Shown here in pieces: positions 19,435 through 50,699 of a DNA stretch of 64,000 bases. The stretch is from Paragordius varius. Taxonomy: Eukaryota; Animalia; Nematomorpha. Position 1 is the stretch's first letter. Each line of letters opens with the position of its first letter. Made by a program: the position numbers and the translations under genes. The notes under the pieces were generated by a model. That model was given only the letters and a program-made list of their open reading frames with translations. It was not told the origin of the DNA and made no database searches. The DNA lies in NCBI GenBank assembly GCA_964247055.1, contig OZ176057.1, positions 5,828,001 through 5,892,000 on the forward strand, read 5' to 3'.

Positions 19435-21413
19435 ATGGGTTTAAAAAATCAATCTTTCTTCATATCATTGAGTTTAGCCATAATTTTTATGGCTTTGTTG
19501 CAAGTGTTTAAGAGCGCATTGTTAAAAGATAAAATGGGAACGATTTTAGGCGGTTTTCTGGGTTCAAACATATTTATATTCCTTCTTACTGCCATAAATA
19601 ATGGTGAAAATATTTTGTTTGGAGATGGATTTCAATCCACTTCCACTGAAGGTTACTTTCCATATTTTTAGGTTTTCTTATTAGTTGGTTTTTGCCTATT
19701 TATATCTGCCATTTTTTCTGGTTTTATTCACCGTGTATGTTTTACAACTTGGTATTTTACAACGTTTTTTTTTATAATTCTATAGCATATTGTTTTCAGT
19801 TTTGGCCCTATATTTTGTGAACAAAATATCGTTCGAAAAATATCAATCGTATCAGATTGCCGGAATGGAAACGCACTTAAAATCAGCCCAGAAAAGTTTA
19901 TTTTTAAATTATTTTGCTTTTAATTTGAAATTTATTTTTTTTATTAATTTTGTATTATAATAAACAATTTTACATGATAATTAATTAATAAATGTTTTTT
20001 ACAAAATTTATATTACTAATATTTTTATAAGGGCCAAATATTGTTTTGGGTATGATAATTTAAATTAATTTTTTAAATTGATAAGAAAAATATTTTTACA
20101 TTTTTTGTTGCAAAGATTATTTAAATATATAATAAACTTATTAATAAATAGAATGTTGTAAAAATAAAAATTTTAAATTCATTTTTTTTTCAAATTAAAA
20201 ATTAAAATTATGCTAACAAAATGTAAAAACAAATATTTTTTTCTAAAAATTAATCGTATTCTCTCAGGATTTTAAATACCATTAACAATTCAAATTTACC
20301 CTTGAACAATTTGAATTCCTACCTAAAATAAATTGTGTTTCAGAGGTAATATAACTCATTATTAATATTAAACATATCTTTATGGCGCTTAGTTTATTAT
20401 TTTTTCAGTATTATTTTAATTTTAAAGGTATTTTATTTTTTCCAAAATATAAAAATACAAATAATTAATAATCTTTAGAAACACATAATTTATTTTTAGG
20501 GAGAATTTGAAGTGTAAATGGTATACTTAATGTTTTAAACTGCAAACTATATAATAGAGATATATATTGGTAATATTATCAATCATTTATTTTATAATTG
20601 TAATTAAATAATTTTTTATTGACTTAATTAAGCCTAAAATATATGGGGGTGTTTTTTGAAAAAAAATTTTCTTTATATTTATACGTTGTTTTGTCCGTAT
20701 AATTTCAATATTTACTATCCTACTTTTGCTGTAATAAATATACAATATAAATAAAGTTTAAGTTTAGTAAAGACAAAACGGAATTATTTAAAGACAAATA
20801 TTTTTCTTGAAAAAACGGCCATATTTTTTGATATTTGATTTTTTTAAATTAATAAACGATAAAAACTGTGAAATTCAGTAAAAATTGGAAATATACGGAC
20901 AAAACAACGTAAAAATATAAAGACATATATTTTTTCTAAAAGACAACCCCATACTTTTCAAAACCTTAATTTTTCTCATATATAAGCTATTTAGTTACAA
21001 TTGTTAAATATAGAATTGATTGTGTTAGTTATATATATATATCTATATCACACTTTGCCATTTTAAATAATGAGTTATATTGAAATAAATCAAGAGATTT
21101 AAAAAGTATGGTTGGTTGTCTTTTAGATTAAAATATTTGTCTTTATATTTTTACGTTGTTTTGTCCGTATAATTTTTATTACTTATATATATATATATAT
21201 AATTGAGTACGATATCAATTTACATCTCTATTTTCTATTTTATAATTCAAAACAATAAATTTGAAATATATTTTTTTTAAATATAATTAGTTTTTTTTAT
21301 ACAAATTATTTATATTTTTATTTACTACAGATAAATTACACGGTAATACAATGGCCAACAATGTCAAATCCCCCTACAATATTACGACTTCATCCAAGAA
21401 AAAAATGAAATAA
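19435..21413 (+). CDS. KRTCAP2: Keratinocyte-associated protein 2 (KCP2, oligosaccharyltransferase accessory subunit), about 158 aa
   Basis: Exons 19435-19651, 19685-19751, 19786-19895, 21331-21413 (477 nt, in frame). Diagnostic motifs TILGGFLGS-IFIFLLTAINNGENILFGDGFQ and SGFIHRVCFTTC. The last exon ends ...SSKKKMK*, a dilysine ER-retrieval motif. The last exon is less certain than the first three. Confidence 0.9.
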
Positions 21414-22865: not shown

Positions 22866-25633
22866 TATTTTTTGCGACTGACGATGGATAGAAAATTTTG
22901 GTTTTAAAATACGTATTTTCACGCCATGGGATTTATTAAGTAGAGGATCGAAATATTCCTTAAAATATGTGACTTGACTTATTTTATTTAAAATATTTTT
23001 GAATGAATTTCTATTTTATTGAATTTATAAACGCGTTTATTAAATTTTTTATATCAGGAGTTAAATAGCTCCGAGGGCCGAATTCTTGACTAAAAAAATT
23101 TGATTTGATTCCGTAAAAATATATGGAATTTTATAAATATTTTTAGGTTTTAAACATAAAACTTTGTAAAAGATCTCAAAGTACCATTTATACAAATAAT
23201 ATGTGTTTGATCATTGCCAAAATCTTTAAAAAATATTAATTTAATTTACTTATTTAGATTTAGTAAATGGCATTTTATATAATTAAAATTTTTGTATTTA
23301 GCATATTTTTAAGCTTCTCGCTAGTTGGAATATATCTGAGGGCTGCAGATCAGATATCCCTGTTTTAAAAATATTTTACATGTAGTTTTACATGCATTTA
23401 TAATATGAAATATTTCCTACATTTTTTCCAAAATTTACATAAATCCCCCAAAAAAATATAAAATAAACTCTTTGAATACTATTATATTTTAGCCATTTTT
23501 ATATGTAAGGACATCGTCCCAATTCTTCCGAAAATAATTTATCAAAATAATTTAAAATCCATTTATTATTCATAAAAAATACGTTTTTTTTTCAAATCCA
23601 ATTGGAATGAATTAGTTCCGAAAATGAGGGGGAATTAAATTTTACGACGAGATATGGTAAAACTGGGTTTTTACCTTATATGTCAACGGTTAACATGTTC
23701 GGGCCAAGTACTAACGAATATTATCACACACATTGTCTATTATTTATACAGTAAAAAGTGAAATTATACGCGGACAAAACGTAGTAAAAATAGAAAAGAC
23801 AACCATATTTTTTTCTAAAAGACAATCATATTTTTCTTGATTTATTTCAATATAAAACTCATTGTTTTAAATGGCAAAGTATATGTGTAAAATAGACATA
23901 TACACTAACACAATCAATTCTATATTTTACAATTTTAACTAAGTAGCTTATATAAGAAACAATAAGGGGTCTTTTTGGAAAAAATAGTTGACTTTATATT
24001 TTTACGTTTTGTCCTTCCATATTTCAATTTTTACTTCGGGGCTGGACATTGTGCGAATTCTGGCCCTACAAACAGTGCCCAAAGTGATTGATTATATTTT
24101 AGGCATTTGAAGTTTTTCTTGCTTCTTGCTGGAAACCGATTAGAACTGTGCTGGTAACCAGAATTATCGCATGCCTACACCTGACTGAATAATCAAACGC
24201 CAGAATCCACAGTGTTGAGACCATTTTAAAGCTTAGAAACATATGGAAACACAACGCAATCACACTACCTATTACCGGATGAAAGTACCAACCCCTAATA
24301 TAATTAGAGTTTTGTAGTTGGAAAACTCAAACGCGTTACGTAAGCGTCAACCCCACCCCGATAGGCTAAATTTAGGGGTGGGAAAATAATAATGTAAGGG
24401 ATTTTATGCATAGAAATGTTTTATAGGTTAGATTGGATATTTAATATTCACATGTTTTTCACTTGCTGTTTTTTGCCTGTCACGTGGCGTACAATACGAT
24501 GATTTCGCAATGTCTTGTTATATTTTATGTAATGTTAAAATAAATTTACTTTGATTCGTAACTTATAATTAACTTAGCTTGTCATATTTAAAGTAACTAG
24601 CGATCATATTTATAAATTAATTAGTTTTTTACCATTTGTAAAATTTGGGGGTAGAGAGTTCTACAAGCTAATTAAATTTTTTATTGCTGTTTTGTGGTTA
24701 TCGATATGAAAAAAAATTAATCTACTATTTTTTAATTGTAATTATCAAATTGTCCCACTATTTTAATAGTTCTTTAAAAATTTATTGATAGAAAAATATT
24801 AAACATTTATTTAATATTCGTTAAAATTTATTAATGCGGGAATGGTACATAATATATATATATATATATAATAAATGCGTATAAAATGGTTTTTTACGAC
24901 AGTTTAATTGAGCAAAAAAATAGTATTTATTAAAAATAATGTGAGGTAAAATTATTTGCTTATCAACTCTCTCTGTTGTAGGATTTATTTTTTCTTTCCA
25001 AGACCTAAATCAAAATCAATAGTTTAGAAAATTAAAATCGTATAATTTTCAAACACTGTCAAGAAAATTAGGAGGTATATTAGAATATTCTGTTTTATCG
25101 ATCTTTTTCGAATCAAAAATCTAACAAGTCACATTCGTGCAATATATGGGCGGCACAAAAATATACTATTTATAGTTCAAATTCACCCTTAAACATTTCA
25201 AATTCACCCTTTTAAAATTCACCTTAAACAATTCAAATTCACCTTAAAATAAATTATGTGATTTCGGGCAGCTAATATAACTCATTATTAATATGATATA
25301 TGTTTATATATTTTATTATTTTTTCAGTATTATTTTAATTTTAAACAAAATTTTTATTTTTGAAAAATATATATAGGTAATTTTCAATCTTAATTAACAT
25401 ATATTTGAGGGTGAATTTGAATTGTTTAAGGATGAATTTGAATTGTTCAAGGGTGAAATTGAATTGTAAATGGTAAATATGTTCGGCTTTAACAAATATT
25501 TTCATTAGATTTTAAACATAAGATCATAAAAATTACTATTCATAATTCATTTTTTTCTAGTGTTCATTGCCAAAATTCCGAACAATATATTCAGGAAATT
25601 TGTTTAAGATAATCAATTTTACTTAAATTTCTT

Positions 25634-26946: not shown

Positions 26947-27066
26947 ATATTTGGTAAAGAATGAAAAAAACAAGAGTTCTATGGTAATTCTTATATTTTT
27001 TTGATGAATGTGATAGATATCGTTAATACCATAGAGCTCTTGTTTTTTCCATTCTTTACCAAATAT
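26947..27066. repeat. Small foldback: 40-bp arms with 2 mismatches and a 40-nt loop
   Basis: atatttggtaaagaatgaaaaaaacaagagttctatggta (26947-26986) is inverted at 27027-27066; abuts the end of a MITE-B. Confidence 0.85.
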
Positions 27067-27713
27067 TTATATACCCACCCCATTTAACGAAACACAAAAT
27101 AAATTTTTGATAAAATTAAGGATACATGAATGTACTCTAAGTAAACTATATAACAGCGGATAAATTTTCATTAATATTTTTGGAGTTTTCCCAAAAATAA
27201 ACGTAAAAATGCTGAGATGATATGATTCGAGGTTTTGATATTACAGTAAAAATTGAAATTATACGGATAAATGGTAAAAATATAAAGACAAATATTTTTA
27301 TGTAAAAGACAAATCCATACTTTTTTAATCTTGATTTTTTCATAAATACTTTTTAGCTACAATTACAAAATATAGATTTGATTGGGTTAGTAATATCTCT
27401 ATTTAATATTTTACAGTTTAAAACAATGAGTTATATTGAAATAAAGCAAGATTTAAAATGTATGGTTGGTTGTGTTAAATAAAAAAATATTTGTTTTTTA
27501 AATTTTTTTCATTTTGTCCGTATAAATTTAATTTTTACTGTAATATTAAATAGTTTACGGATATTTTGTTAAAAATAAAATTTTGTAAATAATTTAAAAT
27601 ATCCACATAAAACTTTCTATATAATTCGTTGATGCAATATCTATTAATTCAAATGTGTTGTTTGACTTTAAATTTTAGCAAATTTTTTCGTAAAAAACTT
27701 AAATTATATTTAC

Positions 27714-30700
27714 TGAAGGTGAATAAATCATTTAGTTTAGTAAAATCTGAAGTTTTAAAAATGTATTAGATTACCCAAAGATTTGTAATATAAAGCGTTT
27801 TTATATTGTTTCCAACTTGTCTAAAAACTACTATAATATACGCTTTAACACAATTTCCTACAAAAATTTCCTGTATAATAGCAAGATATGCATTTTTCTA
27901 GCATATATATCTTTTATTTTCACATGTTGGCATTGTTTTTTAAAAAAATTCTTATTTACTGAGATAAATAATTATTTGGAACTTTCAGAGCTTACTGATT
28001 CAATTTTAAATTTAATAAAAATATAATGTTGCAACTTTGAACTGGAAAATATAATTTACAGGTTAATTAAAATGTTTATGAAGATTCTATACAATTATAA
28101 TAAAGGATATAAAGAACCATTTAAAAAACATGCAATGATTTAAATATTTTTGAATAGATTAAAGTTTGTGAACATTTAAAGCAAAGCATTTTGCAAAAAA
28201 ATAGGGTATATATTTAAGAAAATTTAGTTTTATAAAATATTTTAGCCCATATATACTTCATATATCCAGTAAAAATTAAAATTATACGGACAAAATGTAA
28301 AAATATAAAGACAAATTTTTTTAAAAAGGCAACCATACTTTTTAAAACCTTAATATATTCAATAAAAAACATTCAATAACAATCTTAAAATATATAATTG
28401 ATTGTGTTACCAATTTGAATTTCTATGTTGTACTTTGTAGTTTAAAACATTATAAATTAATCATATGGTTGTTTTTTTGAAAAAAAATATTTGTCCTTAT
28501 ATTTTCATGGTGTGTCCTTGCGTACAATTTCATTTTTTCCAGTATTTAATTTAAGGTTTTCCATGTGTTTTAAAAATTTATATATATATATATATATATA
28601 TAAATATTGACATCGATTATTTTAACATGCGATAAATATTTCAAAAAGTACTTAAAACTTTTTATTTTTTTAGGAATTAATTTTTATCTAAAAATATATA
28701 CCACCAAGTATGCTTTGTAAACTTTGGGCAAGCTGGGGATCTATATTAAAAAAATATTTTATATAAAATGCTTAAATAATCAAAATAAGTTTTGTTAAAA
28801 ATATATTTATGATGGATATGAAACTAACTTTGCAACAGAGGAGAAAGTGCTGGTAGCTTAGGTCCTAAATCTAAATATAAAATTTAAATTTTAAAGATGT
28901 AAAACGAAAAAAAAAGGCAACTCTTTTTTTCAAACGACAGCCAACCATATTATACATATATATATATATATATATACCTTATATTTTGTACAGTAAAATC
29001 TGAAAATATACGGACAAAACGTCAACATATAAAGACAAATATTTTTCGAAACCTTAATAATTAATTAATTTTAATCGTAAACTATTAATTTATTGTGCTA
29101 TCATTTCTATTTTATATTTTGCAGTTTAGAGTTATATTCATAAAAATAAGATTCAAAAAATGTGGTTGTTTTTTAGAAAAATGTATATGTCTTTATATTT
29201 TTATGTTTTCCCAATTGTCTATATAATTCAATTTTAACTCTAAAATATTTTAAAGAATTTCAATAAATTTTATAAAATGTCTATGTATTGATATGTCAAC
29301 GCATCTTTTAAAATAACACCCTGTGCCTGTAAAATGCATTTTTGCAAAAAATAGGTCACTAAATATTTTTTTCAACTTTATTGCCTTTGTGATAAGTGTT
29401 TTATATACAGAAGTGATTTTAAATTCCATCTAAAAAAAGTATTTAAAGAATTTAACAAAAATACCATTTACAATGCAAATTCACCCTAAAAATAAATTAT
29501 GTGTTTTCGGGCTGCTAATATAACTCATCATTAATATGAAATATGCCTTGATGGGATAGTCAATTATTTTTTCAGTATTATTTTGATTTAAACAAAATTT
29601 TATCTTTAAAAACTATATGAAAAAAAATAAGTATTTTTAAATCTTGAAAAACACTGGATTTATTTTAGAGTGAATTTGAATTGTTCATGGGGTGAATTTG
29701 AATGGTAAATGGTATAAATGGTAGCGTTACGAAGCCTAAATACAGTAAAAATGGAAATCATACAAACGAACCGTAAAAATATAAAGACAAATATTTTTTT
29801 CTAAAGAAAACCCTCAACTTTTTTAAACCTTAATTTTTCTTTTATAAGCTATTTAGTTACAATTGAAATATATAATTGATTGTGTTTTCAATTTATATCT
29901 CTATTTCATATTAAAAATCAAGATTTAAAAATATGAGCAGTTGTCTTTTAGAAAAAAATATTTGTCTTTACATTTTTACACATTGTCCGTATAATTTCAA
30001 TTTTTCCTTCCTCTATGTCGTCTATGCCATTAAAATTATTATAAATTGGATTGGGTAGGGTTATAAAAATATAAATTATAAATTTATAGATGTAAAAATT
30101 TAAAAATATTTTGAAAAAAACTTTAAAAATTATTTTTATTTTTACAAAACAATTTTATAAATACCTTGCGGTTGATTGACCACTTGTTTTTGTTGCAAAA
30201 TGTGTTGCAAATATTGAGAAACTATAACATTAAATTATAAAATGTTTTATTTATTAACCAATATTTCTATTTAAAAAAATGTTTTATTAACCAATATATC
30301 TAATTTTTTTGAATAAAAAAAAATGTTAAATAAATTCTGCATATATTCATGACCATGAGATTGATTCAAAAATAGCCAATTTTTTGTTAATTCCAAAGAT
30401 GATCTCAAAATAAAATATACTTTTTAGCTATAATTTAGCCCTTGGAAATATATTTAACACTTCGATTCAAATTGGGGTATCTAAATACCCAGACTAAATT
30501 TAAATTATTATTTTTAAAAAACTACTGAAGGAAACGGTCCCAATTAAAATTTATGCTTCTATCCTGATAAAAATTATATAAATATGCCAAAAAATCTTGA
30601 TAAAATTTTGGTTTAAAAAAAAGTCCATCTCAAACTCCTTCGACGCCATTTTTATTTTACAAAATTTTTGTTAAATATCGTCTTTATTTAATTTTAAGGG

Positions 30701-33700
30701 TAAAACTTAAGCTAATTTTTTATATAAATTACCTCTAACATTCATAGAAATAGGAAAAGCGGTTTAGTTTGTATAATTTTTCAATTTTACAATTTGATAC
30801 ATGTCACGTTGACGAAATTTTACCTTTCGGTTTTAGCTTAAAATAAGTATTATCAAGTATTTTTGAATAAAATTTTTTATATATTTCGGTTTATTAATGT
30901 TAGATAAGTGCAAAATTTTGCCATGGTTTCGATTCCTTCTATATTTTTTAAAAAATTTAATTTTTAACAGGCCTGGGGTATCCAACTACCCCAATTTGAA
31001 TCGAAGGACTAAAATGAGTGTGTTGTATCCAAGTGTTAAACAAAAAAATAGTTAATATTTAAAGAATTTTAATATTTAAAAATAATTTAGTTTAGTAATT
31101 ATTATCAAAAATTTATATATTATTTTTTAAAAAAACAATATCTAATTACAACCATAAAATATAATAGCTCTATTAATTCTTAAATTTATTTTTATATTTA
31201 GAAAATAATATGGGTGACTTTCTTGTAAAAAAAAGTTCTGTCTTTTTCTATTTAAATTTTTGTCCGTATAAATGCAGTAAAAATTGAAATTATACAGCTG
31301 ACAAAAGGTAAAAACATAAAGACAAATATTTTTTTGTAAAAGACAACCCCATACTTTTTAATACCTTAATGTTTTCCATATAAGCTACTTAGTTACAATC
31401 GGAAAATATATAAACTATATTTCTATTCTATACTTTGGACTTTAAAACAATTTGTTATGTAATTAAAATAAAAACGATTCAAAAAGTATGGTTGGTTGTG
31501 TTTTTTAGAAAAAAGAATTTGTCTTTATTTTTTTACGTTTTGTCGGTATAATTTTAATTTTTACTGCATATATTAATTTATAAGAATTTACTAGTTTGTC
31601 CAGGGATTGGCTTGGAATCCAATGATGCTAAATTTATACATTTTTATATTATTTAGCAATTTTTCAAAAAAAAATTAAATATGGGCATAGATGAAATCTA
31701 AAGTTTTAATGTTGATAATATTTGATTCGGAAGCGTATAGTAAGATTGTTAATTATAAAAGTTATTAAATAAAAATAGTACTAAAGTTTTTATTATCCTA
31801 CATTTTATAGCACAAAAACATATTTTTATAATATCCGATAAAAATTTTTATCAGGTAACAAGGGTAATTTAAAAGTCATTCTAAAAAAAATTACATTAAT
31901 AAACCATTTACAGATCAAATTCCCCCTTGAAAATTCAAATTCCCCCTTGAACAATTCAAATTAACCCTTGGGCAATTGAAACACCCTAAAATAAATTATA
32001 CGTTTTTTAAAATTAAAAATTACTTATATATATATTTTGATATTTTTAAAAAAGGAAATTTTGTCTAAAATAATTACAATACACTGAAAAAATAAACTAT
32101 GCCATAAGAATATATTTTATATTAATGATGAGTAGTTATATTAGCTGCCCGAAAACACTTAATTTATTTTTAGGCTGAATTTAAATTGTTCAAGGGTCAA
32201 ATTTGAATTATTCAAGGGTAAATTTAAATTGTTCAAGGGTGAAATTTAAATTGTAAATGGTATATATATATATATATATATTTATATATAGATGTATTTT
32301 ACCTTGAGAATTCTGGATTTTCATCAACAATTGTTGAAGTTGATTTACTAAAAGTTTCCACAAAAAATAATTACAGGAAAAATTACTATATAACTAAACA
32401 AAGAAAAAAAACTAAAATTATTTATTTTAACTCAATGACACGATTAGATTGGAAAAAATTAAGATTTAATAATGTCGTTTTTATAAAATTGTCTTTCTTT
32501 GAGTTTCTGAATACCAGTATGAGTAAGTATATATTGCTAGAAAGTTATTAATTATTGCTAAATAACATATGCAGCAAAGAATTGTTATTGGCGAATAAAA
32601 TAGTAAAAAGTGAAAAAATAATTGTACACCCTTGAACAATTCAGATTCACCCTAAAAATAGATTGTGTGTTTTCGATATAACTCATAATTAATATATAAA
32701 TAGATCTTTTTGGCATAGTTAATTATTTTTTACATAAATTATTTTAGAATAAATTTGAGTTGTTCAGGGGTGAATTTGAATTATTCGAGGGTTAATTTGA
32801 ATTGTTTAAGGGTGAATTTGAACTATCAATGGTATGTATATAATGCTAGAAAGTTATTAATAATTGCTAAATAACATATATATATATATATATAGCAATG
32901 AGATTTATTATTGGTGCATATAGGAATAGTAAAAAGGGAAAAAAATAACTATATAAGCCAATAAAACTGCCCTTTGTTTTATATGCTCTATTTGGCAATT
33001 GGAATTAAGAATAATTTTCTAGCAATGTTGTATACTTACTCATATACCATTTACAATTCTAATTCACCCTTGAACAATTCAAATTCACCCTTGAACAATT
33101 CAAATTCACCCTTGAACAATTCAAATTAGCCCTCAAATTAAATATTTGCTTTTTAAGATTAAAAATTACCATAATTTTTATATATTTTTAAAAAGTAAAA
33201 ATTTTGTTTAAATTAAAATAATACTGAAAAATGATAAACTATAACATAAACATATATTTCATATTAATAATGAGTTATATTAGTTTGAAAATACATAAAT
33301 TTTTTTAGGTTGAATTTGAATTATTTGAATTGTTTAAAGGTGAATTTGAATTGTTCAAGGGTGAATTTGAATTGTTCAAGGGTGAATTTGAACGTAAATG
33401 GTATACTATAATTTCAATTTTTACTGTAAATGCATAATAAATTTTAGGAATTACCATTCATCTGTTCTGTCTGCGGTTTGGGTTCCATATCTAAATTTTA
33501 TTGATTATATTTATATTATTTGAACTAATAAAGTTAAATATTAATAAAATTAAATTGGATTTCCAAATCACAATACCTTGGTCCAAGTTTTGTTTAATAA
33601 TATCTAAAAAAATTTACACAGTAATATTTGAAATTATACGGGGACGGACAAAACGTAAAAAAATATATAGACAAATATTTTTATTTAAAAGACTAACAAC

Positions 33701-33782
33701 CCCATATACTTTTTAAAATCTTAATTTTTCACATTAATAGTTATTTAATTACCATTGTAAAATATAGGATTGATTGTGTTAG

Positions 33783-33821
<39 letters not shown>

Positions 33822-36713
33822 TTCATAATTTGCCATTTAAAACAATATTGAAATTAAATCTCAAGGTTTAAAAAGTATGGGGTTGTCATTTAGAAAAAAA
33901 TATTTGTCTTTATATTTTTACGTTTTTTGTCCGTATAATTTCAGTTTTTACTGTATATTATAAAATTTATAAATGATATAAACTATTTGATTTACTATAC
34001 CATTCACAATTTAAATTCATCACCTTAAAAGTTAATTATGTGTTTTCGGGCAGCTAATATAACTCACATTATTAATATAAAATATATCTTTAAGGCTTAA
34101 TTTCTTTATTATTTTAATTACAAACAAAATTTTTAGAAATATAAAAAAATTAGTTTATTTTAAGGGTGAATTAGAATTGTTCAAGGGTGTGAATTTAAAG
34201 TGTAAATGGTATATATTATATGAAAAAATTCAAAACTTTTTTTAACAAAATCTTACCCATCAGATAATTTACGAAGGCCTTCTTTTCGTCTTCTAAAACA
34301 CAAATATATGTTTCAATTGCGCAATATAAATAAATTGAATAATTTTTTACGGATAATTAAATTATACTTGTTTTAAATTTCTCCTCTAAAAAGTCATCAA
34401 ACTCTTGAAAATGTTCTAAATCATTATCGGAGATTGATTGTTGAGTTTGCATTGTTTGAGGTTCCATAGAATCCCTAGGAGCAGATGGCGCATTTTCTAT
34501 GGGGGGTGGGGGTCCTAATTTTTATGATCAAATTTTTTTTTATCCAAAATATTAGAAAAAAAAACATTTTAAAAAGCTAATTTTTTATGATCAAATTTGA
34601 CTTTTTTTTCGTTAAAATCAGTCGTAGTACTCTTTAAGGTGTATTGATCAGTATTTCACAGTAAAAATTGAAATTATATACTACGGACAAAACGTAAAAT
34701 ATAAAGACAAAAATTTTTATCTAAATTCTTAGCGATTTACTAAATTATCATTGATTGTGTTACCAATATACGTCTCTATTTTATAATTTACAGTTCAAAA
34801 CAATGAGTTATATTTAAAAATAATTGAGTCTAAAAAGTATGGTTTTAGAAAAAAAATTTGTTCTTAAATTTTTACGTTTTGTCCGTATATTTTAAGTTTT
34901 ACTGCATTATAAAATAATATTTAATTTAATAATAATTTTTTTTTATCCAAAATTAAAAAAAAACACTTTAAAAAGCTAATTTTTTAATTAGAGAGTTTTT
35001 TCGTTAAAATCATATTCTTTAAGGCGTATTTATCAGTATTTCACAGTAGAATTTGAAATTTTATAGGGACAAACAAAACTTAAAAATTTAGGGACACATA
35101 TTTTTTATTTAAAAGAAAAGCATACTTTTTTGAAACTTAAGTTTTCACTTATGAATTATTTAATTAGACGTATAATGGATTGATTCTTTTAAATAAAATA
35201 TTTGCCTTAATATTATTTTTGAGTTTTGTCCGTAAAATTTCGTTTTTTATTTTACTCTCTTGATTAACAAATACTTTTTTATACTAGCCCCTTCTTTTAT
35301 TATCAATTGTAAAAATTGAAATTATATAGTGACAAACAAAACTTAAAAATATAAAGACAAATATTTGTTTTTTTAAAAGACAACAAGCCCATACTTTTTA
35401 TAAACGTTGATTTTTTTAAATTATAACTCATGGTTTTAAACTACAAAGTTGAAATCGATATGTATATCGATAAAACAATCTCAATTATATATACCATTTA
35501 CAGTTCAAATTCACCCTTGAACAATTCAAATTCACCCTCGAACAATTCAAATTCACCCTCGAACAATTCAAATTCACCCTTGAACAATTCAAATCGACCC
35601 TATAAATAAATTATGTATTTTCGAACTAATATAACTCATTATTAATATGAAATATATGTTTATGTTATAGTTTATTATTTTTTCAGTATTATTTTAATTT
35701 AAAACAAAATTTTTATTTTTTAAAAATATAAAAAAATATTGGTAATTTTTAATCTTAAAAAGCATATATTTTATTTGAGGGTGAATTTGAATTATTCAAG
35801 GGTGAATTTGAATTGTTAAAGGGTGAATTTGAATTGTTCAATGGTGAATTTAAAATGTAAATGGTATATTTTAAAATTGTTGTAATTATATAATTTATTC
35901 TAGAAAAATTAAGGTTTATTTAAAAAAGTATGGGGTTGTCTTTTTAGTAAAAAAATATATTTGTCTTTATATTTTAACCTTTTGTCCGTATAATTTCAAT
36001 TTTTACTGTAAGATTAAGTTTAGTTTAACTTTTCTAATATCTTTTTTATTATAAATTAGAATAATTATTCTTATGGGTGAACTAATCGAAATACTTACAA
36101 AGACAAGTTGAAACAATATTTAACAAAAGATATCTGGTTCAAAACTTAAAATTTTAAATATTTTATAAAACGAAATATAAAATAAATATATACGTTCAAA
36201 TAGCTTTTTAACTGCTTCCTCAATGAATCCTGTATAAAATTAATATATAATTATAAATAATTATTTTAAATTATATATTATAATATAAATTATTTTACTA
36301 TTTTCTACAGCATCTGTATTATATAAAAAAATTAAATAATTTATATCTAAATATATACCATTCACAATTCAAATTCACCCTTGAACAATTCAAATTTACC
36401 CTTGTAAAATAAATTATGTGTTTTCGGGCTAATATAACTCATCATTAATAAGTAATTTATTCTTATGGCATAGTTTATTATATATTAATTTTAAACGTAA
36501 TTACCCTTTTGTAAAATATAAAAAAATATAGGTGATTTTCAATCTTAAAAAACAGATAAATTTTAGGATGAATTTGAATTTTTCACAAGGGAAATTTGAA
36601 TCGAGGGTGATTTGAACTGTAAATGGTATATTTGTTAATTAATAAAAAAATTATCAACATACCTTTTAAACTTGTCATCAATTTCGTTATATAGTCAAAC
36701 ACTAAATCAAATA

Positions 36714-36754
<41 letters not shown>

Positions 36755-38805
36755 AAAAATATATAATATATTTAAAAAATTAATTTAAACTTAAATATTT
36801 ACGTGTGTAAATAATTAATTTTTTAGCAAGTTAGTTTATTTCAAAAAAGATATCACGTTTTTCAAATATATGGTGGTCTCCCAAACACTTTTAATCGTTT
36901 GCTTTTTATTTTTTCTGTTTTACTCTTTACAAATTATAATTTTTACAGTGCGTTTATGTGTTTAATATTTTCTGTTTAATTAAGCTCTCTTTACTTTTTA
37001 TGTTTTTGCTCCTTATAAATTTAATTTTTACTGTATTTATACTTCAAAAAAGGGGTGTTTAATATGCGGCCTAGTAAAATAGTACTTTGGCCCACGAGAA
37101 ATTTCAATTACAAAATTACTAAGAAATGGAGGTAAAATTTTTTTGTTAAACAAATCTACCCATATTTCAGCAATGAACTAGCGAAAAAAATGTTAAAATA
37201 AACAGTATGTTTTACAATCTTACATACCATTTACAGTTCAAATTCACCCTCAAACAATTCGAATTCATCCTTGAACAATTTATATTCACCCTAAAAATAT
37301 ATTTTGTTTTCAATCTAACATAACTCATTATTAATATGAAATATCCTTTTACCACATAGTTTTTATTATTTTTTCAGCAGTATATTAGTTTTAAATATAA
37401 GTTCATATTTTAAAAATATTAAAAAATAAAGGTAATTTTTAATTATCAAAAACACATAATTTATTTTAGGGTAAATTTGAATTGTTCAAGGGGGTGAATT
37501 CGAATTGTTCAAGGGTGAATTTGAACTGTAAATGGTATATTTGGCGCCAACTGCCGTATTTTGTAGGATACCTACCCCTGCCTTAAATCATATTAAATTT
37601 TTAAAATCAAACTTTTTGTAAAAAATTCTTTTTGCTTTTTTGAATGTCCATTGGGCGGTGCGCATTCATATGAATCGCTTTCATATTCATCAACGTTGTA
37701 ATATGCTGGACTACAGCCTATACATAATAAATATCCAAAAAAATATTTAGATTAGATTATAAATTATATAAAAGTGTTGTAGAAATTTTAATAGCCGACA
37801 AGTAAAAATATAAAAAGACAAACATTTTTGCTTTTTAAAAGGAACAACTGGTGTACTTACTCTTTTTTAAAACTTGATTTTTCGATTTATGTTGGTTAAT
37901 TGGTAATACACATCAGCGTATGTTTAGAAATATACAGTTAAAATTACAATTATACGGACAAAACGTAATAAATAAAGACAAATTTTTTCTCTCAAAAGAC
38001 AACCATATTTTTTAAACCTTAATTTATTTAAAAAGGATCTCATTTAAATAAAATCGTCAAATACATAATTGATTGTGCTACCAATTTATACATGTCTATT
38101 ATATACTTTGCAGTATAAAACATTGATGAGTTCAATTTAAAAAGTATAGGGTTGTCTTTTAGAAAAAAATATTTTTACTTTTTGTCCGTATAATATAATT
38201 TTTTACTGTATTTTGCCCTTAATTAATAAAACAATTGTAATGTTATAGGGTTGGATAAAATGTTTAATTTTAGCCATTTGTTGTTTTTACCCATACCCAA
38301 CTGTATTACCAATTACTTAATTATTTATATAATAAAAATTTCAAGGTTTAAAAAGTATCTGGTTGTCTTTTGAAAATAATATTTGTCTTTATATTTTACG
38401 TTTTGTCCCACTATAATTTGAACGAATATAATATCTAGATTTTCCAGCATCATACTACACCCCTCCAGAAATAAAAGAAGCATAAAAATATCTGAAAAAT
38501 AATTTAAAAAAAAAACTAACAAAGAATTTTAAAATACTTAAAAAGTTATTTTAAAAGTAAGTGATAATTTAAATATTTTTCTTTTAAACTTAAATATTTT
38601 TATCATTTCAATTAAACTTAACTATAAATATACAATTACCTGGGCGAGATTCAACCAAATCTAATACATTAAAAATATGACATTTAAGTATAAAAAAATT
38701 AATTTTTATAAGTCAGCAATATTTTTTTAAAAAAAATTATTTACCATGTTTCGTGACAACACAAATCAAGAACAAACTCCAAAGTAGTATTGAGATTGAT
38801 TTCAT
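27714..38805 (-). CDS. Secreted Gln/Leu/acidic-rich protein encoded by phase-1 symmetric mini/micro-exons (micro-exon gene B), at least about 249 aa; 3' end unresolved
   Basis: Hand-spliced AG/GT exons: 38805-38745 (signal), 38660-38640 (21), 37717-37613 (105), 37581-37576 (6, tentative), 36701-36663 (39), 36313-36299 (15), 36229-36194 (36), 34514-34368 (147), 34292-34257 (36), 33490-33455 (36), 32347-32303 (45), 31627-31592 (36), 30221-30165 (57), 28864-28829 (36; alternative in-frame AG gives 42), 28740-28702 (39), 27746-27714 (33). Joined: MKSISILLWSLFLICVVTKHDLVESRPGCSPAYYNVDEYESDSYECAPPNGHSKKQKEFFTKSRVFDYITKLMTSLKDAVENRFIEEAVKKLFERPPPPIENAPSAPRDSMEPQTMQTQQSISDNDLEHFQEFDDFLEEKFKTKDEKKAFVNYLMDMEPKPQTEQMNVNQLQQLLMKIQNSQASLDSKPIPGQTISQYLQHILQQKQVVNQPQGPKLPALSPLLQNPQLAQSLQSILGDFTKLNDLFTF. 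The exons are GC-richer than their flanks. Confidence 0.72.
30458..31035 (+). mobile_element. Non-autonomous piggyBac-like element, copy 2
   Basis: TTAA at 30454-30457 and 31036-31039; CACTT...AAGTG ends; internal copy of the left-end motif inverted near 30986-31007. Confidence 0.82.
35309..36007. mobile_element. MITE-A with nested MITE-B (35494-35864)
   Basis: The MITE-A left and right halves are separated by a complete TA-flanked MITE-B. Confidence 0.85.
37227..37535. mobile_element. MITE family B copy in an intron of micro-exon gene B
   Basis: TA-CCATTTACAGTTC...GAACTGTAAATGG-TA. Confidence 0.88.
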
Positions 38806-41442
38806 TTTAAGGGCAATATAATTAAATTTAAAAAAATTTTTATCCGTAAAAGTATTAACCAAATTTAGATGAGAAAAATTAAATAAAAAAATGTAATATA
38901 AAAATTTTTGTATAATAAAAGACTCCTGGAAAAATTTTGGCAGAAAATAGGGTTTGAGGGCCATTTTTGTATCATTCAAACAACAGGATCTAAGACTTTT
39001 TTTTCAGATATTTTTTATGTGTTTTATGTTTTTGCATAAATTTTATGGGCAAAAATAAGGGGTTTTTCTTATGTAAAACTCAGAGCATTCTTTACTAAAA
39101 ATTAGATAACCCACATCACTAAATACGTGTCTATAAAAATGTTGCCTAAAGCAAAACTAAAGAAAGATATACAATTCCTAGTTCTTGTTAAAATAAAATA
39201 AATGTTTTAACATATTTTAGTCAATCTCTATTTTAAGATTTTACAGCTTTCGGAAATTGCAATTACATAAATTGTTTCGTGTCGCGTTTTTCAAGAGTTT
39301 TTTTCCCGAAAACTACCAAATTTAGTCAAAAATTATATTGAATGTAAAGATATTGGTTCACGCGTAATAGCTTTATAATTCAAGTTTATTTCTAACTTTA
39401 GTAGTTTAATTCAATAAAAAAGGCGACAAAAAATTTACTATGCAATTTTTTAAAGTTAGGAAGAACAAGGGTCATACATGCATAAAAACCAATAAAATCT
39501 TTATACAAGAATCAGTATCTATATAAAATTTAAAATATACTTTTTAAAGAAACTCTTCAAAGACAACCTAAAGACAACATATATGCAAAATTTAGTAGTG
39601 TTCAATTCCGTTAGGCATAATAAATATCTCGATAAAAATTTATGTAAATAGTATTTTTGATAAATAAATGTATCAGCAGGATTCTAACAAGATGGATTTG
39701 GTTTTAGCCCATATGAGTAAGTGAAAGCTTCGTTCAATAACATTAAATATATCACATTACAAATAAAAATTAAATAAATACTTTTTAAAACTCTTAAATT
39801 TTTACCCATTCAAAATGGGTTATTTTACTAAAAATAAAAGGAAATTTCTAGAAATCTTAATTCTAGTTTATAACATTGAAAAAAATATTTTTACAAAAAT
39901 GATTTAACTTAAAAATCAATGTGAGCGAATTTAATGGTATTTCGCAGTATAGTTGAATACACAACGTAAAATATAAAGACAAATATTTTGATTCAAAAGA
40001 CAACTCGACATACTTTTTTAAACCTCCTTAATTTTTCTTTATAAATTATATAATTACAATAATTGTAAAAAATATAATTGATTGTTTTACCGATATAAAT
40101 ATTAATTTCAACTTTGCAGTTTAAAACCATGAGTTATTACAGTTGAAAACTGAAATTATACGGACATGATGAAAAAATGTAAAGACAAAATTTTTTTCTA
40201 TCAGACAACTATACTTTTTAAATCTAGATTTATAACAATATAACTCATTGTTTTAAATGGCAAAGTGTGAAATAGAGATATATAATACTAACACAATCTA
40301 TTCTATATTTTACAATTGTAACTAAGTAGCTTAAAAGGAAAACATTAAGGTTTTAAAAAGTATGGTTGACTTTAAGAAAAAAATATTTGTTCTTTATATT
40401 ATTACATTTTGTCCTTATAATTTCAATTTTTATATTTTCAAGCAAGACAAGATTTATAAAATATGGGGTATTTTAAAAAAAATATTTGTCTCTATATTAT
40501 AACGTTTTGTCCGTATAATTTCAATTTTTACTAAAACTTTGAAGTATCCATAAAATTATCTCCATCACACCTTTGATTTAGTTTATATTAAAAAATTATT
40601 TTTCAAGAATCTTTATGCTATTAAAAATTTTTTTTAAAAATAGTAAAATTCATCTGATACAAAATGTGTGGTAAAAAGTTTTTAATATTTTCAATAACAC
40701 TAAACCGAAAAATTATCGGAATAGCCAAAAATTTGAGAATTTCTGAGAAAAATATTACTAAAATATTATCTAATGCGCTATTTTTGCGTTTTTTTTCAAC
40801 ATAGTATTAACAAAAAAATATTTTTATATATTTTTTAAATCACACTAAAAATTAAATATATACAAAAACTTATGTAAAAAAAGACAACGAGACTTTTTCT
40901 AACGTCGATTTCTAATATTTTAAAGTTATTTATCTTTGAATATATTAATAACAATTTACATTTCCATCTCATATCATATGTAGTTTAAAACAATGAGTTA
41001 TATTTAAAAAACCGAGTTTTGTAAAAAAATATTTGTCTATGTTTTTACGTTTTGTCCGTATAATTTTACTTTGATTTATAATCAAGATTTTAAAATACCA
41101 TAAAATCTATTTAAATAGCCTACAATAATTATTGAATCAAAAAGCCAAGTAATGGAATTATGCAAAATTTGCAGCTACATAAAATATATTTAAGGTTAAT
41201 TAATTTTAATCCATGTAATATGTGTATTTAGATTTCGATTATTATCAGAATCAAAAACAAATAAGTTCCTACCAAAAACTAGAGATAAAAATTTTTAAAA
41301 TTTTCAGCAATTATAATATAATTTTATTCAAGACAAGACCCATATAGAGATCAAATGTTGGCTATAGAAATAACCAAGTTTTTTGTGAATTAAACATTTC
41401 AAGGACATAGAAGACATGTCTAAAACGTAACAGAAATATATA

Positions 41443-47013: not shown

Positions 47014-50000
47014 TTAAACATAATGCAAAGTTGCAAATGCGATTGATAAAAGTGAAATTGTATTGTGTAAATATTTCCTTCGACCATCATCTTTATATAT
47101 GAGAATACAGGGAGGAGCTGTATGGGTTTTGATTGGGCTATCGCCACCAATGGAAAGCGGGTCACGAGGTCCGCGAGCACGTGCCTCCGTTGCCATGGTG
47201 ATTCTTCCAACGGGAGTAGGAATGACAGAAGCAGTATTTAAATGAGCAATAATGGTGGAACGCATAAGGGGTGTTAGGGTGGGATCACCCAAAGATCGCA
47301 AAATCTATTTGATGAAAAAAAGCGAACGAATTATATCAAAGGCGAAACATAAAGACATTCTTTTTTTTCAAAGGAACACTTTTTGAATATTTTTTTATAT
47401 AAAAAATTGATGATTGTTTAAAATGGCAAAGTGAGGTATAATGCTAACACAATCAATTGTATATATATTTTAAAATTATAATTAAATAATTTATAGTGGA
47501 AAAATTAAGGGTTAAGTATGGGGTTGTTTTTTAAAAATAATATTAAAGTTAAACAAAACGTAAAGACAGATCTTATTTTTGATTCCAAAAGAATACTTTT
47601 TTTTTCTAGGATTAATTTTATAATTCCAATTGTAAAATATATATAACAATTGATTGTGTATGTTAAATTTGGTCCGTATAATTTCGAATGTTTGTCATAA
47701 TAAAAAAATATATGTCGGGACAAAGTTTATTATCATTAATAAAATAACTATTTCTGCCAAAAAATTTAATATTTCACCCTTAAATACTGTATTATTTTGA
47801 TTCTACATATAAATATAAGTTTTTTAAAAATATAAATAAATACGATTTTTTAAATATTTTTTTTAGAAAATATGAAAATTTTATTGTTTGTAATTAATCA
47901 AACAGAATACAGAAAAAATAATAAACTACTATGCCAAAATAAGAAGGAAATTATTATTTAAAAATAATTTAATTTTATAGGTAAATTTGAAGTGAAGAAA
48001 TATATATATATATATATAATATACCATTTACAATTCAAATTCCCCCTCGAACAATTCAAACTGAAAAATAAATTTTATCGAGCTAATATAATTCATTATT
48101 AATATGAAATATATCTTTATGGCGCGCATAGTTTTATTCATTTTTCAGTAAAAAATTTTTATTTTAAATAAAATTTTCATTTTTTTAAAAATATATAAAA
48201 AATAAAAGTAATTTTTACCCTTAAAAACACAAATTTTATTTTTAGGGTGAATTTGGATTGTTCATTCAAGGGTGAATTTAAAGTGATGATAATATATATA
48301 TAGTTTTATTTTGTTGACATTCCTAGTAATATATTTAAATTTATTTAAATAATTCTTAAATTTTTATTGAATTAGCTCTATAAATCTTATATATAACTAA
48401 TTCCTAATCTAATTCCTAACCTAAATCCCCTATATATACCCTATTTTTTTATGTCATTTGTCCAATAATAATTGTTTTACGCTTTAATAATGTAATATGA
48501 TAGATATAATAAAATAAATTTTAACTAAAATTATAATTTGAAAAATACAGACATACATACTTTATTCTTTAAATGGAATTTAGCATACTTTTTATATGGT
48601 TACAATTTCAATAATTGGCTTTATATGCCATTGTATAAATCTTGAGAACAAAAAACGAAAAAAATCATTTTAATTTAATTTTATTATGATTTAAATTTTC
48701 AAACTTTGTTATTAATAATATACCATTTACAATTTAAATTCACCCTTAAACAATTCAAATTCACCCTTAAACAATTCAAATTCACCCCTAACTAAAATAT
48801 ATATTTTTTAAGATTAAAAATTACCAATATTTTTATATAGCGTTATAAGAAATAAAAATTTTGTATAAAATTAAAATTATATTGAAAAAAATAATAAACT
48901 AAGCCATAAAGATGTATTTCATACTAATAATGAGTTATATTAGTTGCCCGAAAACACATAATAAATTTTTCAGGGGTGAATTTGAATTGTTCAAGGGTGA
49001 ATTTGAATTGTTTAAGTGTGAATTTATTTTCAAAATTGAAAATATACCATTTACAGTTCAAATTCACCCTTGAACAATTCAAATTCACCCTCGAACAATT
49101 CAAATTCACCCTAATAATAAATTATGTGTTTTCACTAATATAACTCATTATTAATATAAAATATATCTTTATGGCATAATTAATTATTTTTTTCAGTATT
49201 ATTCTAATTTAAAACAAAATTTATTTTTTATAAATATATTAAAATATAGGTAATTTTTAATCTTAAAAAACATGTTATTTATTTGAGGGTGAATTTGAAT
49301 TCTTCAAGGGTAAAATTGAATTGTTTAAAAGTGAATTTGAATTGTTCAAGGGTAATTTTTTTTCAAATTTAAAACCATACCATACCTGATACTTACAACA
49401 CGGATCCCAACTCCAAAAAACCGTGTATAAAAGAGTGAAAAAAGCCGAAGTTCCGGCCCCGACTAACGTTGCAATGGTTAACCAATCTTTAGGAGAATTA
49501 AAGAAACTTCTGGAAGGAATAACATCTCTGGAATAATTGTAGGATTGATAATTATAGGATTGATAATAATTGTCACCAAAATATGGTGACATAGGACCGG
49601 CTGATTGTCGCGTCCGACGGGACGAGATGAGCAGATGATTACCCAAGTATGTCATAAGCGTTTGGGCCAAGGCACCGGCCCGCCTCAAGTGTCGCAATGT
49701 TATACATTGTAGCGCTAACGTCGCTAAACCCGATAAAACAGCTGATTTATGGAGAAAATTTCCAACTGTGATCCACTTGACTGTGTATTCACTCAAGACT
49801 CGATCGTAAATTAGGATGATGGGTTTACGGGCTTCAATAGCATTTTCAAAATCTATCGTTGCACTTAAGAGTGGTTGAGATGAAATCAGCTGTTTCCGGT
49901 CGTGGTGAGGGTTCAATAGCTCTTCAGGAATAAGCAAAGGTTGTTGTTTGCTATTTGTTGTAAGGTTATAAAAACTTTGCGATTCATCATAATACGATTG

Positions 50001-50699
50001 GGGGTATATGACCTTGAGCAAATCATTTGTTTTATCATCGCAAACTTCAAGAGGCAGGACGCCATCTCGACTTTGCGTCTCATATGGTGGAATAATGAAA
50101 TCATCCATAGAAGCAGTTTCGACCTCTTCTTCGTCATGATTGGTGTTGCTATGACAACCGTCAGATTCGGTCATGTGAGCATAAGCATCCAATGAAGGTT
50201 CATCTTTGGATAGATGATGATGTTCGTCTGCTCCATTCTTTTTATTATTCGTCATCAGCAGCTGTTTTTGCTGTAAAAGTGATTGTTGTTGAACTTTTTT
50301 TCCTTTATCTACTAAGGCCGCAGATTTTGTTTTAGGTTTGTTTGACTTTAAAGAGGAAGTAGTTGGAAACTCATCAGGGTTTTTAGGTGAATCCGAAAGT
50401 GTGGAAACTGAGGTGATAGATTGAAGTCCATCCTCCTGGCTGTGTGCTTCGGACAAATTTGGAGCGACAAATTCGTCTGATTCTAGAAATTGTTTAACAC
50501 AGCTCAAAATTAGAGAAAGCGTAAAATTTTTTAAATAAAAATGAGTTATTTAATTATATGAAACACTGTTCATTAAATTTGGAATATATTATAAAATTTA
50601 AATTCATCTCGATATAATATATATCTATGGAATTTAGTATTCAATAATATCAAAACGTGTATATATTAAAAATTTATTAAAAATGTTACCTGAAATCAT
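47014..50699 (-). CDS. TMEM11: Mitochondrial transmembrane protein 11 (PMI homolog) with long extensions, about 465 aa
   Basis: Conserved motifs WITVGNFLHKSAVLSG, LYTVFWSWDPCCKYQ (donor CAG|GTATGG at 49386/49385) and, in the last exon 47304-47014, PCILIYKDDGRRKYLHNTISL. The track ORF starts at TTG; inferred first exon 50699-50690 (ATGATTTCAG|GTAACA) spliced to 50482 restores an ATG in frame. The exon 1 call is inference. Confidence 0.9.

Follow-up and report, generated by a model that had tools for sequence, protein, structure and literature searches.

A probable 12-exon gene with all-phase-1 mini-exons and a predicted secreted orphan product

The minus strand from 38805 to 28688 of the window (the whole 64,000-nucleotide stretch of DNA analysed here) probably carries a real, intact and lineage-restricted protein-coding gene, referred to as gene B, whose 12 exons would encode a 222-residue secreted precursor. 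The model spans 10.1 kb, from an ATG at 38805 to a TAG at 28690-28688 (minus strand), in surrounding DNA that is 78% AT and filled with MITEs (Table 1). Its ten internal exons measure 21, 105, 36, 147, 36, 36, 45, 36, 57, and 36 nt (median 36 nt, mean 55, five of exactly 36 nt), and all of them are multiples of three and phase 1-1. Intron phase is 1 in 11/11 introns, with all 11 exons after exon 1 beginning at codon position 2. The locus had initially been described as a chain of mini- and micro-exons; the former term suits gene B but the latter does not, since exons of 36 nt or less carry only 201 of the 669 nt (30%) of the coding sequence.

Exon structure and coding evidence

An initial annotation had proposed a multi-exon gene on this strand, and sequence statistics support the proposal. 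Every exon size that it listed is present on the minus strand as an AG...GT-bounded, stop-free phase 1-1 segment, five of them exactly 36 nt long, and the ORF track indeed sees the signal exon alone (ORF 38737..38979). Its total of 16 exons stands in part, with 12 of the 16 performing better than chance and the 6-, 39- (36701-36663), 15- and 33-nt exons being chance-like, and its open frame of about 249 codons is reduced to a supported frame of 222 codons.

Table 1. Predicted exons of gene B, its long introns, and candidate exons left out of the model (log-odds are codon-position log-odds)
Feature	Position	Strand	Description
Exon 1	38745..38805	-	ATG at 38805; 20-codon predicted signal peptide plus 1 nt; ends in phase 1; donor GTAAAT; on a GC island
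Exon 2	38640..38660	-	21 nt, phase 1-1; GC island 38627-38669; single AG within -30/+12; log-odds +5.6 in frame
Exon 3	37613..37717	-	105 nt, phase 1-1; log-odds +10.8; both mature-protein Cys and an acidic Tyr cluster
Exon 4	36194..36229	-	36 nt, phase 1-1; core of predicted amphipathic helix 60-75; log-odds only +1.9, moderate support
Exon 5	34368..34514	-	147 nt, phase 1-1; PPPP start, acidic region, predicted amphipathic segment 108-119; single AG
Exon 6	34257..34292	-	36 nt, phase 1-1; log-odds +4.6; 75-nt intron upstream
Exon 7	33455..33490	-	36 nt; Pro-containing linker; log-odds +7.8
Exon 8	32303..32347	-	45 nt; predicted Gln/Leu amphipathic helix 148-161; one AG and one GT nearby; log-odds about 0, moderate support
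Exon 9	31592..31627	-	36 nt; Pro-containing linker; log-odds +7.4
Exon 10	30165..30221	-	57 nt; predicted Gln-rich amphipathic helix 172-185; log-odds +5.8
Exon 11	28829..28864	-	36 nt; Pro/Leu linker; log-odds +8.5
Exon 12, probable terminal	28688..28740	-	39-nt exon of the initial annotation (28740-28702) read past its GT to the TAG at 28690-28688
Long introns	within 28865..38639		0.65-1.7 kb, filled with two MITE families
Unsupported 6-nt candidate	37576..37581	-	GCAGGG, donor GTAGGT; unsupported; needs a 31-nt intron from exon 3; too short to score
Rejected 39-nt exon	36663..36701	-	Chance-like; log-odds -4.1; GC 26%
Rejected 15-nt exon	36299..36313	-	Chance-like; log-odds +1.4; 69-nt intron to exon 4; such candidates recur about every 120 nt
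Unsupported 27-nt candidate	33577..33603	-	Phase 1-1; absent from the initial annotation; unsupported; log-odds -0.2; 86-nt intron to exon 7
Rejected 33-nt exon	27714..27746	-	Chance-like; GC 24%, log-odds -2.9

The chance background against which these exons were judged amounts to roughly 200 candidate exons in the region. All 12 supported exons coincide with non-repeat GC islands, and GC-rich, non-repeat, open phase 1-1 AG..GT segments occur at 12 loci on the minus strand vs. 1 on the plus strand. The nearest AG and the first GT are nearly unique for each exon (minus strand only), yet 10/10 internal lengths are multiples of three, an outcome with a probability of (1/3)^10 = 2e-5 if the lengths are independent. 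With two further genes of the window (Pfam-confirmed ORFs) as training set for a codon-position model, the log-odds reach 82 bits in the proposed frame vs. 28 and 48 in the other frames, and the share of AT-codon residues (F/I/K/N/Y/L) is 0.35 in the supported exons vs. 0.64 in chance candidates. The frame is anchored by exon 5, which is stop-free from end to end in no phase but 1-1 and scores +24.5 there vs. +10 in the other frames; that exon 1 ends in phase 1 is an independent fact, and the two agree. Coding log-odds are close to zero for exons 4 and 8 (36229-36194 and 32347-32303).

The splicing of these exons is predicted from acceptors that read YAG in 11/11 cases and donors that read GTA in 10/12. 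Position weight matrices (PWMs) built from the proposed sites did not separate real from chance sites, these motifs being information-poor in AT-rich DNA. The donor of exon 6 (GTAAGA) is the sole one in the gene with a G at +5, and that of exon 3 (GTTTGA) is weak and lies ahead of a 1.3-kb intron, where the unspliced frame would stop 6 codons on.

Three introns are short (84, 75, and 88 nt, the first of these separating exons 1 and 2) and are free of MITEs. No MITE overlaps any of the 12 supported exons, and the D1 register (36311-36402) only touches the edge of the unsupported 15-nt candidate. The introns of gene B were probably short at first (about 70-90 nt), most of them being inflated later by MITE insertions. 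A same-phase design of this kind usually results when modules are added behind a phase-1 signal-peptide exon, and under it the loss or gain of an exon stays in frame. Some dozen GC islands within the introns match no exon of the model, and an unexplained island at 37552-37590, just after exon 3, coincides with the 6-nt candidate.

The predicted protein and homology searches

Behind its signal peptide, the 222-residue product is acidic (pI 4.9) and rich in Gln, Pro, Leu, Glu, and Lys. Its N-terminus reads as a classical signal peptide, with the n-region MKS and a 14-residue hydrophobic core, and exon 1 ends just after this peptide; residues 4-18 average 2.61 in hydropathy, and the product contains no further hydrophobic segment (a heuristic rather than SignalP). 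This sole hydrophobic segment bears out the signal exon of the initial annotation, and the amphipathic-helix, Pro-linker and Gln-rich segments that it described are all present. Four amphipathic-helix segments and the Pro-rich linker exons were computed from the sequence, with 16 amphipathic windows in the product vs. 2.9 +/- 3.2 in shuffles. Cys occurs twice in the mature protein, at residues 29 and 46, in both cases outside any CYC motif.

Taken together, these features suggest that exon 1 would supply a cleavable signal peptide, leaving a mature protein of around 200 residues that is acidic and probably largely non-globular. Near its N-terminus there may be one disulfide along with the acidic Tyr cluster, followed by short putative amphipathic helices, each roughly one exon, that would alternate with the Pro-containing linker exons. 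As for a role, our guess would be a secreted matrix, coat or gland protein working via short linear or helical modules. Repetition among the modules was sought and found to be insignificant: exon 7 bears a weak resemblance to a portion of exon 5 (the best of 66 exon pairs, with z 4.5 and an uncorrected p about 0.01), which gives no significant exon duplication within the gene after 66 comparisons, and the three C-terminal linker-plus-helix units are not significantly alike (p 0.066).

The initial annotation had recognised no homolog, and the searches returned the same answer. With the 147-nt exon as query, phmmer (HMMER) gave no matches among 1.84 billion protein representatives; the two largest exons had no match in Pfam, the best ESM Atlas score was a meaningless 0.77, and no metagenome locus matched. 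The joined protein has no paralog in the rest of the window (tblastn, best E 2.8), and Rfam has nothing in the window (up to 38480 and from 38530). Evidence of conservation was likewise not obtained from these searches, in which homologs were sought with single exons and paralogs within the window.

Gene ends and rival readings

An in-frame ATG lies upstream of the proposed start, at 38964, and the intervening 159 nt are mostly 3-30% GC. A start at 38964, if transcribed and used, would bury the signal peptide. At the other end, gene B would most simply terminate by read-through of exon 12 to the TAG at 28690-28688, not at 27714. An AATAAA follows this TAG at 28666-28661, although one such hexamer is expected by chance about every 300 nt here. 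The initial annotation had placed the 3' end at 27714 or in terminal exons further downstream, a proposal that we do not retain: the 33-nt exon is chance-like, none of the terminal candidates downstream of exon 12 is coding-like (all 0.04 bits/nt or less), and there are no non-repeat GC islands between 28699 and 25166.

We consider it unlikely that the locus holds a real gene whose model differs materially from ours. In such a model the transcript could end after exon 3, giving a secreted two-Cys peptide of around 69 residues and leaving the downstream exons to another transcript; alternatively, extra micro-exons (6, 15, 27, or 39 nt) could be included or the 3' end could lie further downstream. 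The weak donor of exon 3, the in-frame stop 6 codons past it and the unexplained GC island right after that exon would all suit an early end, and the 15- and 27-nt candidates precede solid exons by 69 and 86 nt, distances that match the short introns in size. However, neither a start codon nor a signal peptide is present among the downstream exons, which agree with exons 1-3 in strand, phase, and composition, and the optional exons and downstream terminal candidates score like chance. Still less likely is the notion that there is no functional gene at all, with GC islands that are relics of a decayed gene or old mobile-element fragments keeping their AG/GT edges at a silent or non-coding locus. 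It would account for the lack of a homolog (in single-exon searches) or of a paralog in the window, and for GC islands that are as numerous in the region outside the model as inside it. Decay, however, would not leave 222 codons open across 11 junctions with internal exons that are all multiples of three and a frame-specific codon-position signal, nor does any of the 12 supported exons lie on a MITE copy.

If the 12-exon model of gene B is accepted, the question becomes how its exons are used. As the initial annotation held, the internal exons are symmetric in phase 1 and any subset can be removed without creating a stop; none of the exons has a final T, so an exon-exon junction can never generate one. 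This symmetry, together with weak splice sites, would favor a MEG-like variation device in which phase 1-1 cassette exons are skipped in many combinations to yield variant secreted proteins, as a genome-wide parasite strategy, and the variable MEG products of schistosomes are built on the same architecture (PMC10526429). Nonetheless, the exons of gene B are larger than MEG exons, with 30% of coding sequence in those of 36 nt or less, and they do not form a tandem array of near-identical exons. Extracellular or disordered proteins that are spliced constitutively also typically have symmetric phase 1-1 exons. Overall, we regard such a device as unlikely, and the thousands of isoforms that gene B could in principle produce are a formal possibility only.

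Comparison with known secreted-protein genes

Several groups of genes share parts of this architecture. In phase 1-1 extracellular or disordered proteins (e.g., elastin-like or linker-rich), the signal-peptide exon ends in phase 1 and precedes 1-1 modules that encode non-globular segments, the modules usually being recognisable domains or clear repeats. Gene B is alike in its phase-1 signal-peptide exon and the 1-1 modules behind it but has no known domain (Pfam, two largest exons) or significant internal repeat. The vertebrate SCPP/casein genes encode secreted, acidic, Pro/Gln-rich disordered proteins from many short in-frame exons behind a signal-peptide exon and tolerate exon skipping. The gene B product is similarly acidic, Pro/Gln-rich and, as predicted, secreted and disordered, with short in-frame exons behind its signal-peptide exon. 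However, SCPP genes have phase-0 introns and are recognised as a family by synteny and SxE phosphorylation motifs, whereas the introns of gene B are phase 1 in 11/11 cases, with no relation by sequence or phase.

The closest parallels are seen in genes of blood flukes and aphids. Schistosome MEGs have a signal-peptide exon followed by short internal exons in multiples of three, with introns of 0.1-5 kb, and give small secreted proteins without homologs outside the lineage (PMC10526429). Most of their exons measure close to 15 nt, within a range of 6-81, and their products reach 189 residues (PMC10526429). The parallel that the initial annotation drew with MEGs extends to the signal peptide in the first coding exon and to 10/10 symmetric internal exons with lengths in multiples of three; it does not extend to a coding sequence made mostly of micro-exons or to sequence similarity. 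Gene B, by contrast, has a median internal exon of 36 nt, two exons of 105 and 147 nt, and 30% of its coding sequence in exons of 36 nt or less; it has no sequence similarity to MEGs (largest exon searched). Aphid bicycle genes encode fast-evolving, orphan, effector-like proteins of a parasite; behind the signal peptide come numerous internal exons of unusually small size, almost all of which start from codon position 2 (PMC9168663). Gene B shares with them the signal peptide, the small internal exons, the phase 1 of all introns, and an orphan product that is putatively fast-evolving and effector-like. However, paired CYC motifs are the defining feature of bicycle proteins, which have around 17 exons on average (PMC9168663), whereas gene B has no CYC motif and two Cys in the mature protein and is not, as far as can be told, an insect gene.

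ORF-based annotation misses gene B, and standard annotation probably would as well, since all of its internal exons but two are 57 nt or less and lie within 78% AT, MITE-filled DNA. If many such genes are present in the genome, its secretome is badly under-annotated. It would be a bolder, and in our estimate decidedly improbable, step to propose that gene B belongs to a large class of unannotated phase-1 micro/mini-exon genes for secreted orphans in a parasite-like AT-rich genome, a third independent invention of the MEG/bicycle type in which differential exon combination, stage-dependent or stochastic, would diversify the secreted proteins acting on the host. Taken alone, the locus is one more orphan secreted-protein gene. 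As read from its predicted exons, its design matches that of the schistosome MEGs and the aphid bicycle genes, and it is a member of neither family. Should many such genes be present in the genome, the pairing of a signal peptide with same-phase mini-exons, until now associated with blood flukes and aphids, would recur in another parasite lineage, and one could then ask whether such an architecture generally leads to secreted proteins that evolve fast or are variable.

Exon candidates against chance

Gene B is a proposed minus-strand gene beginning with a signal-peptide exon, to which the initial annotation had added about 15 small exons joining into some 249 codons. Each of the exon sizes it listed does occur on the minus strand, in a segment that is flanked by AG and GT and reads open in phase 1-1 (both flanking introns in phase 1). 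However, such segments are common here (206 candidates of at least 6 nt in 11.9 kb), so that openness alone is no proof for short exons, and candidates were therefore judged against chance by criteria outside the original set. Between 26 and 40 kb, 10 of the 22 GC islands (36-nt windows with a GC content of 39% or more) lay on proposed gene B exons, and those elsewhere were for the most part MITE arms. GC-rich, non-repeat, open AG..GT loci in phase 1-1 numbered 12 on the minus strand vs. one on the plus strand, where every phase class held at most two. Most gene B exons have a single AG within -30/+12 nt, and for most the GT proposed as donor is the first to occur at the edge of the island; despite these near-unique boundaries, all ten internal exon lengths are divisible by 3 [(1/3)^10 ~2e-5].

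Exon 1 measures 61 nt from the ATG and thus ends in phase 1, and the 147-nt exon is free of stops from end to end in phase 1-1 only. A nucleotide model by codon position, with the two Pfam-confirmed ORFs of the window as its training set, gave the proposed frame 82 bits compared with 28 and 48 for the remaining frames, and 8 of 11 exons exceeded the 95th percentile of chance candidates. The residues F, I, K, N, Y, and L make up 35% of the mature protein, against a chance-candidate mean of 64%. Acceptors read YAG in 11/11 cases and donors GTA in 10/12, with G at +5 in one donor only and 4/11 exons ending in A; a PWM built from these sites did not separate them from background, and splice motifs therefore add little. 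Judged from its sequence, gene B is a probable real gene with an architecture of a known kind.

Revised gene model and its setting

Twelve exons passed these tests, giving a CDS of 669 nt (222 codons), whereas the 6-, 15-, 39- (36701-36663), and 33-nt exons of the earlier model score like chance. A 27-nt candidate absent from that model (33603-33577) also scored at chance level. The 6-nt exon would require a 31-nt intron after exon 3; if used, it would replace the weak GTTTGA with a consensus GTAGGT as donor of the 1.3-kb intron. The unique stretch past exon 3 is coding-neutral in every frame and may represent an exon of 6 or 30 nt after a tiny intron, or something else.

Downstream terminal exons had also been suggested, but none is coding-like (at most 0.04 bits/nt), and no non-repeat GC island was found between 28699 and 25166. 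The simplest 3' end would be a read-through of the last exon's GT, after which four more codons lead to a TAG at 28690-28688, followed by AATAAA at 28666-28661. At the other end, the island that precedes the signal exon is a probable promoter or 5'-UTR element, and is relevant to where translation of gene B starts. The isolated 39-nt segment further upstream may belong to the end of another gene built in the same way.

Three gene B introns are short (84, 75, and 88 nt), and the long ones (0.65-1.7 kb) are dense with two MITE families. Arms of the first are built of 21-nt tandem subrepeats (GGGTGAATTTGAATTGTTCAA-like); its inverted pairs occur in nearly all long gene B introns and elsewhere in the window, and yield recurrent “NSNSPLNNSN” pseudo-ORFs on translation. 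The second, with TACAGTAAAAATTGAAATTATACGGACAAAACGTAAAAATATAAAGACAAAT... ends, contributes about ten full or half copies to the introns. GC content is 18-29% across the entire window, 41% of which is repeat-masked (13-mer multiplicity within the window); these values are compatible with the published genome of the horsehair worm Gordionus, which has 26.9% GC and 64% repeats, for the most part DNA transposons. The 0.5-kb non-repeat island has neither a long ORF on either strand nor an Rfam match; candidate explanations are a decayed element, a UTR, and an unknown non-coding RNA. The GC peak of the window likewise has no match in Rfam.

Features in and around gene B (forward-strand numbering)
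Feature	Positions	Strand	Description
Exon 3	37717-37613	-	105 nt
Exon 5	34514-34368	-	147 nt
GGGTGAATTTGAATTGTTCAA-like MITE family	e.g., 33042-33133, 35489-35622, 35821-35871, 37492-37542		within 27000-38480
TACAGTAAAAATTGAAATTATACGGACAAAACGTAAAAATATAAAGACAAAT MITE family	27239-27339, 28262-28362, 29738-29838, 31276-31373, 35941-36015, 38169-38210		
Element in exon 9-10 intron	30450-31020		~0.55 kb; terminal inverted repeats (…CGATTCAAATTGGGGTA…) at both ends
Unique stretch	37552-37590	-	~45% GC; begins 31 nt past exon 3
GC island directly upstream of signal exon	38923-38987		in-frame ATG (38964) and polypyrimidine-CAG
Isolated 39-nt segment	39689-39727	-	AG..GT, phase 1-1, on GC island; 0.9 kb upstream of gene B start
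Non-repeat island	24013-24517		0.5 kb, 40-45% GC
GC peak of window	47020-47304		48-60% GC; several frames open, both strands
Keratinocyte-associated protein 2 ORF	19435-19671	+	Pfam match, animal family
Mitochondrial morphogenesis regulator ORF	49275-50507	-	Pfam match, animal family

Predicted product and known systems

The predicted signal peptide (hydropathy 2.61 over residues 4-18) is the only hydrophobic segment of the joined protein, with no second one found. The mature protein would comprise ~200 residues (pI 4.9, GRAVY -0.9; Q 13%, P 10%, L 9%, E 8%, K 8%) with two Cys, at residues 29 and 46, and it has four dibasic sites and no N-glycosylation sequon. Four amphipathic-helix segments are predicted (60-75, 108-119, 148-161, and 172-185), each roughly confined to one exon, and amphipathic windows number 16 vs. 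2.9 +/- 3.2 in shuffles. The N-terminal half is acidic (D+E 24 vs. K+R 15), and the acidic Tyr cluster of exon 3 may provide a context for tyrosine sulfation. The C-terminal half is rich in Gln/Leu, and in it 36-nt Pro-linker exons alternate three times with helix exons; similarity among these three units is not significant (p 0.066), and comparison of exon pairs revealed none that is clearly duplicated.

Gene B is inferred to be spliced, expressed, and secreted, and its exons may be skipped. In-frame skipping of any exon subset is formally possible, since no junction creates a stop, and this is a property of the design rather than evidence of use.

No homologs of gene B were found by a HMMER protein search with the 147-nt exon, a Pfam search with the two largest exons, or ESM Atlas and metagenome searches, nor paralogs in the rest of the window by tblastn with the joined protein, and the literature searched contained no report of micro-exon genes in nematomorphs. 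Gene B is a member of neither the schistosome micro-exon genes (MEGs) nor the aphid bicycle genes: its exons exceed the size that the MEG criterion allows, these searches showed no MEG similarity, and the CYC motifs of bicycle genes are absent. Nonetheless, its design, in which a signal-peptide exon heads a series of small exons that all have the same phase, introns are long, and the orphan product is predicted to be secreted, is shared with both MEGs (PMC10526429) and bicycle genes (PMC9168663), and internal exons of the latter likewise begin at codon position 2. This design is also predicted by the general rule of phase 1-1 exons in extracellular and disordered modules (PMC3632108).
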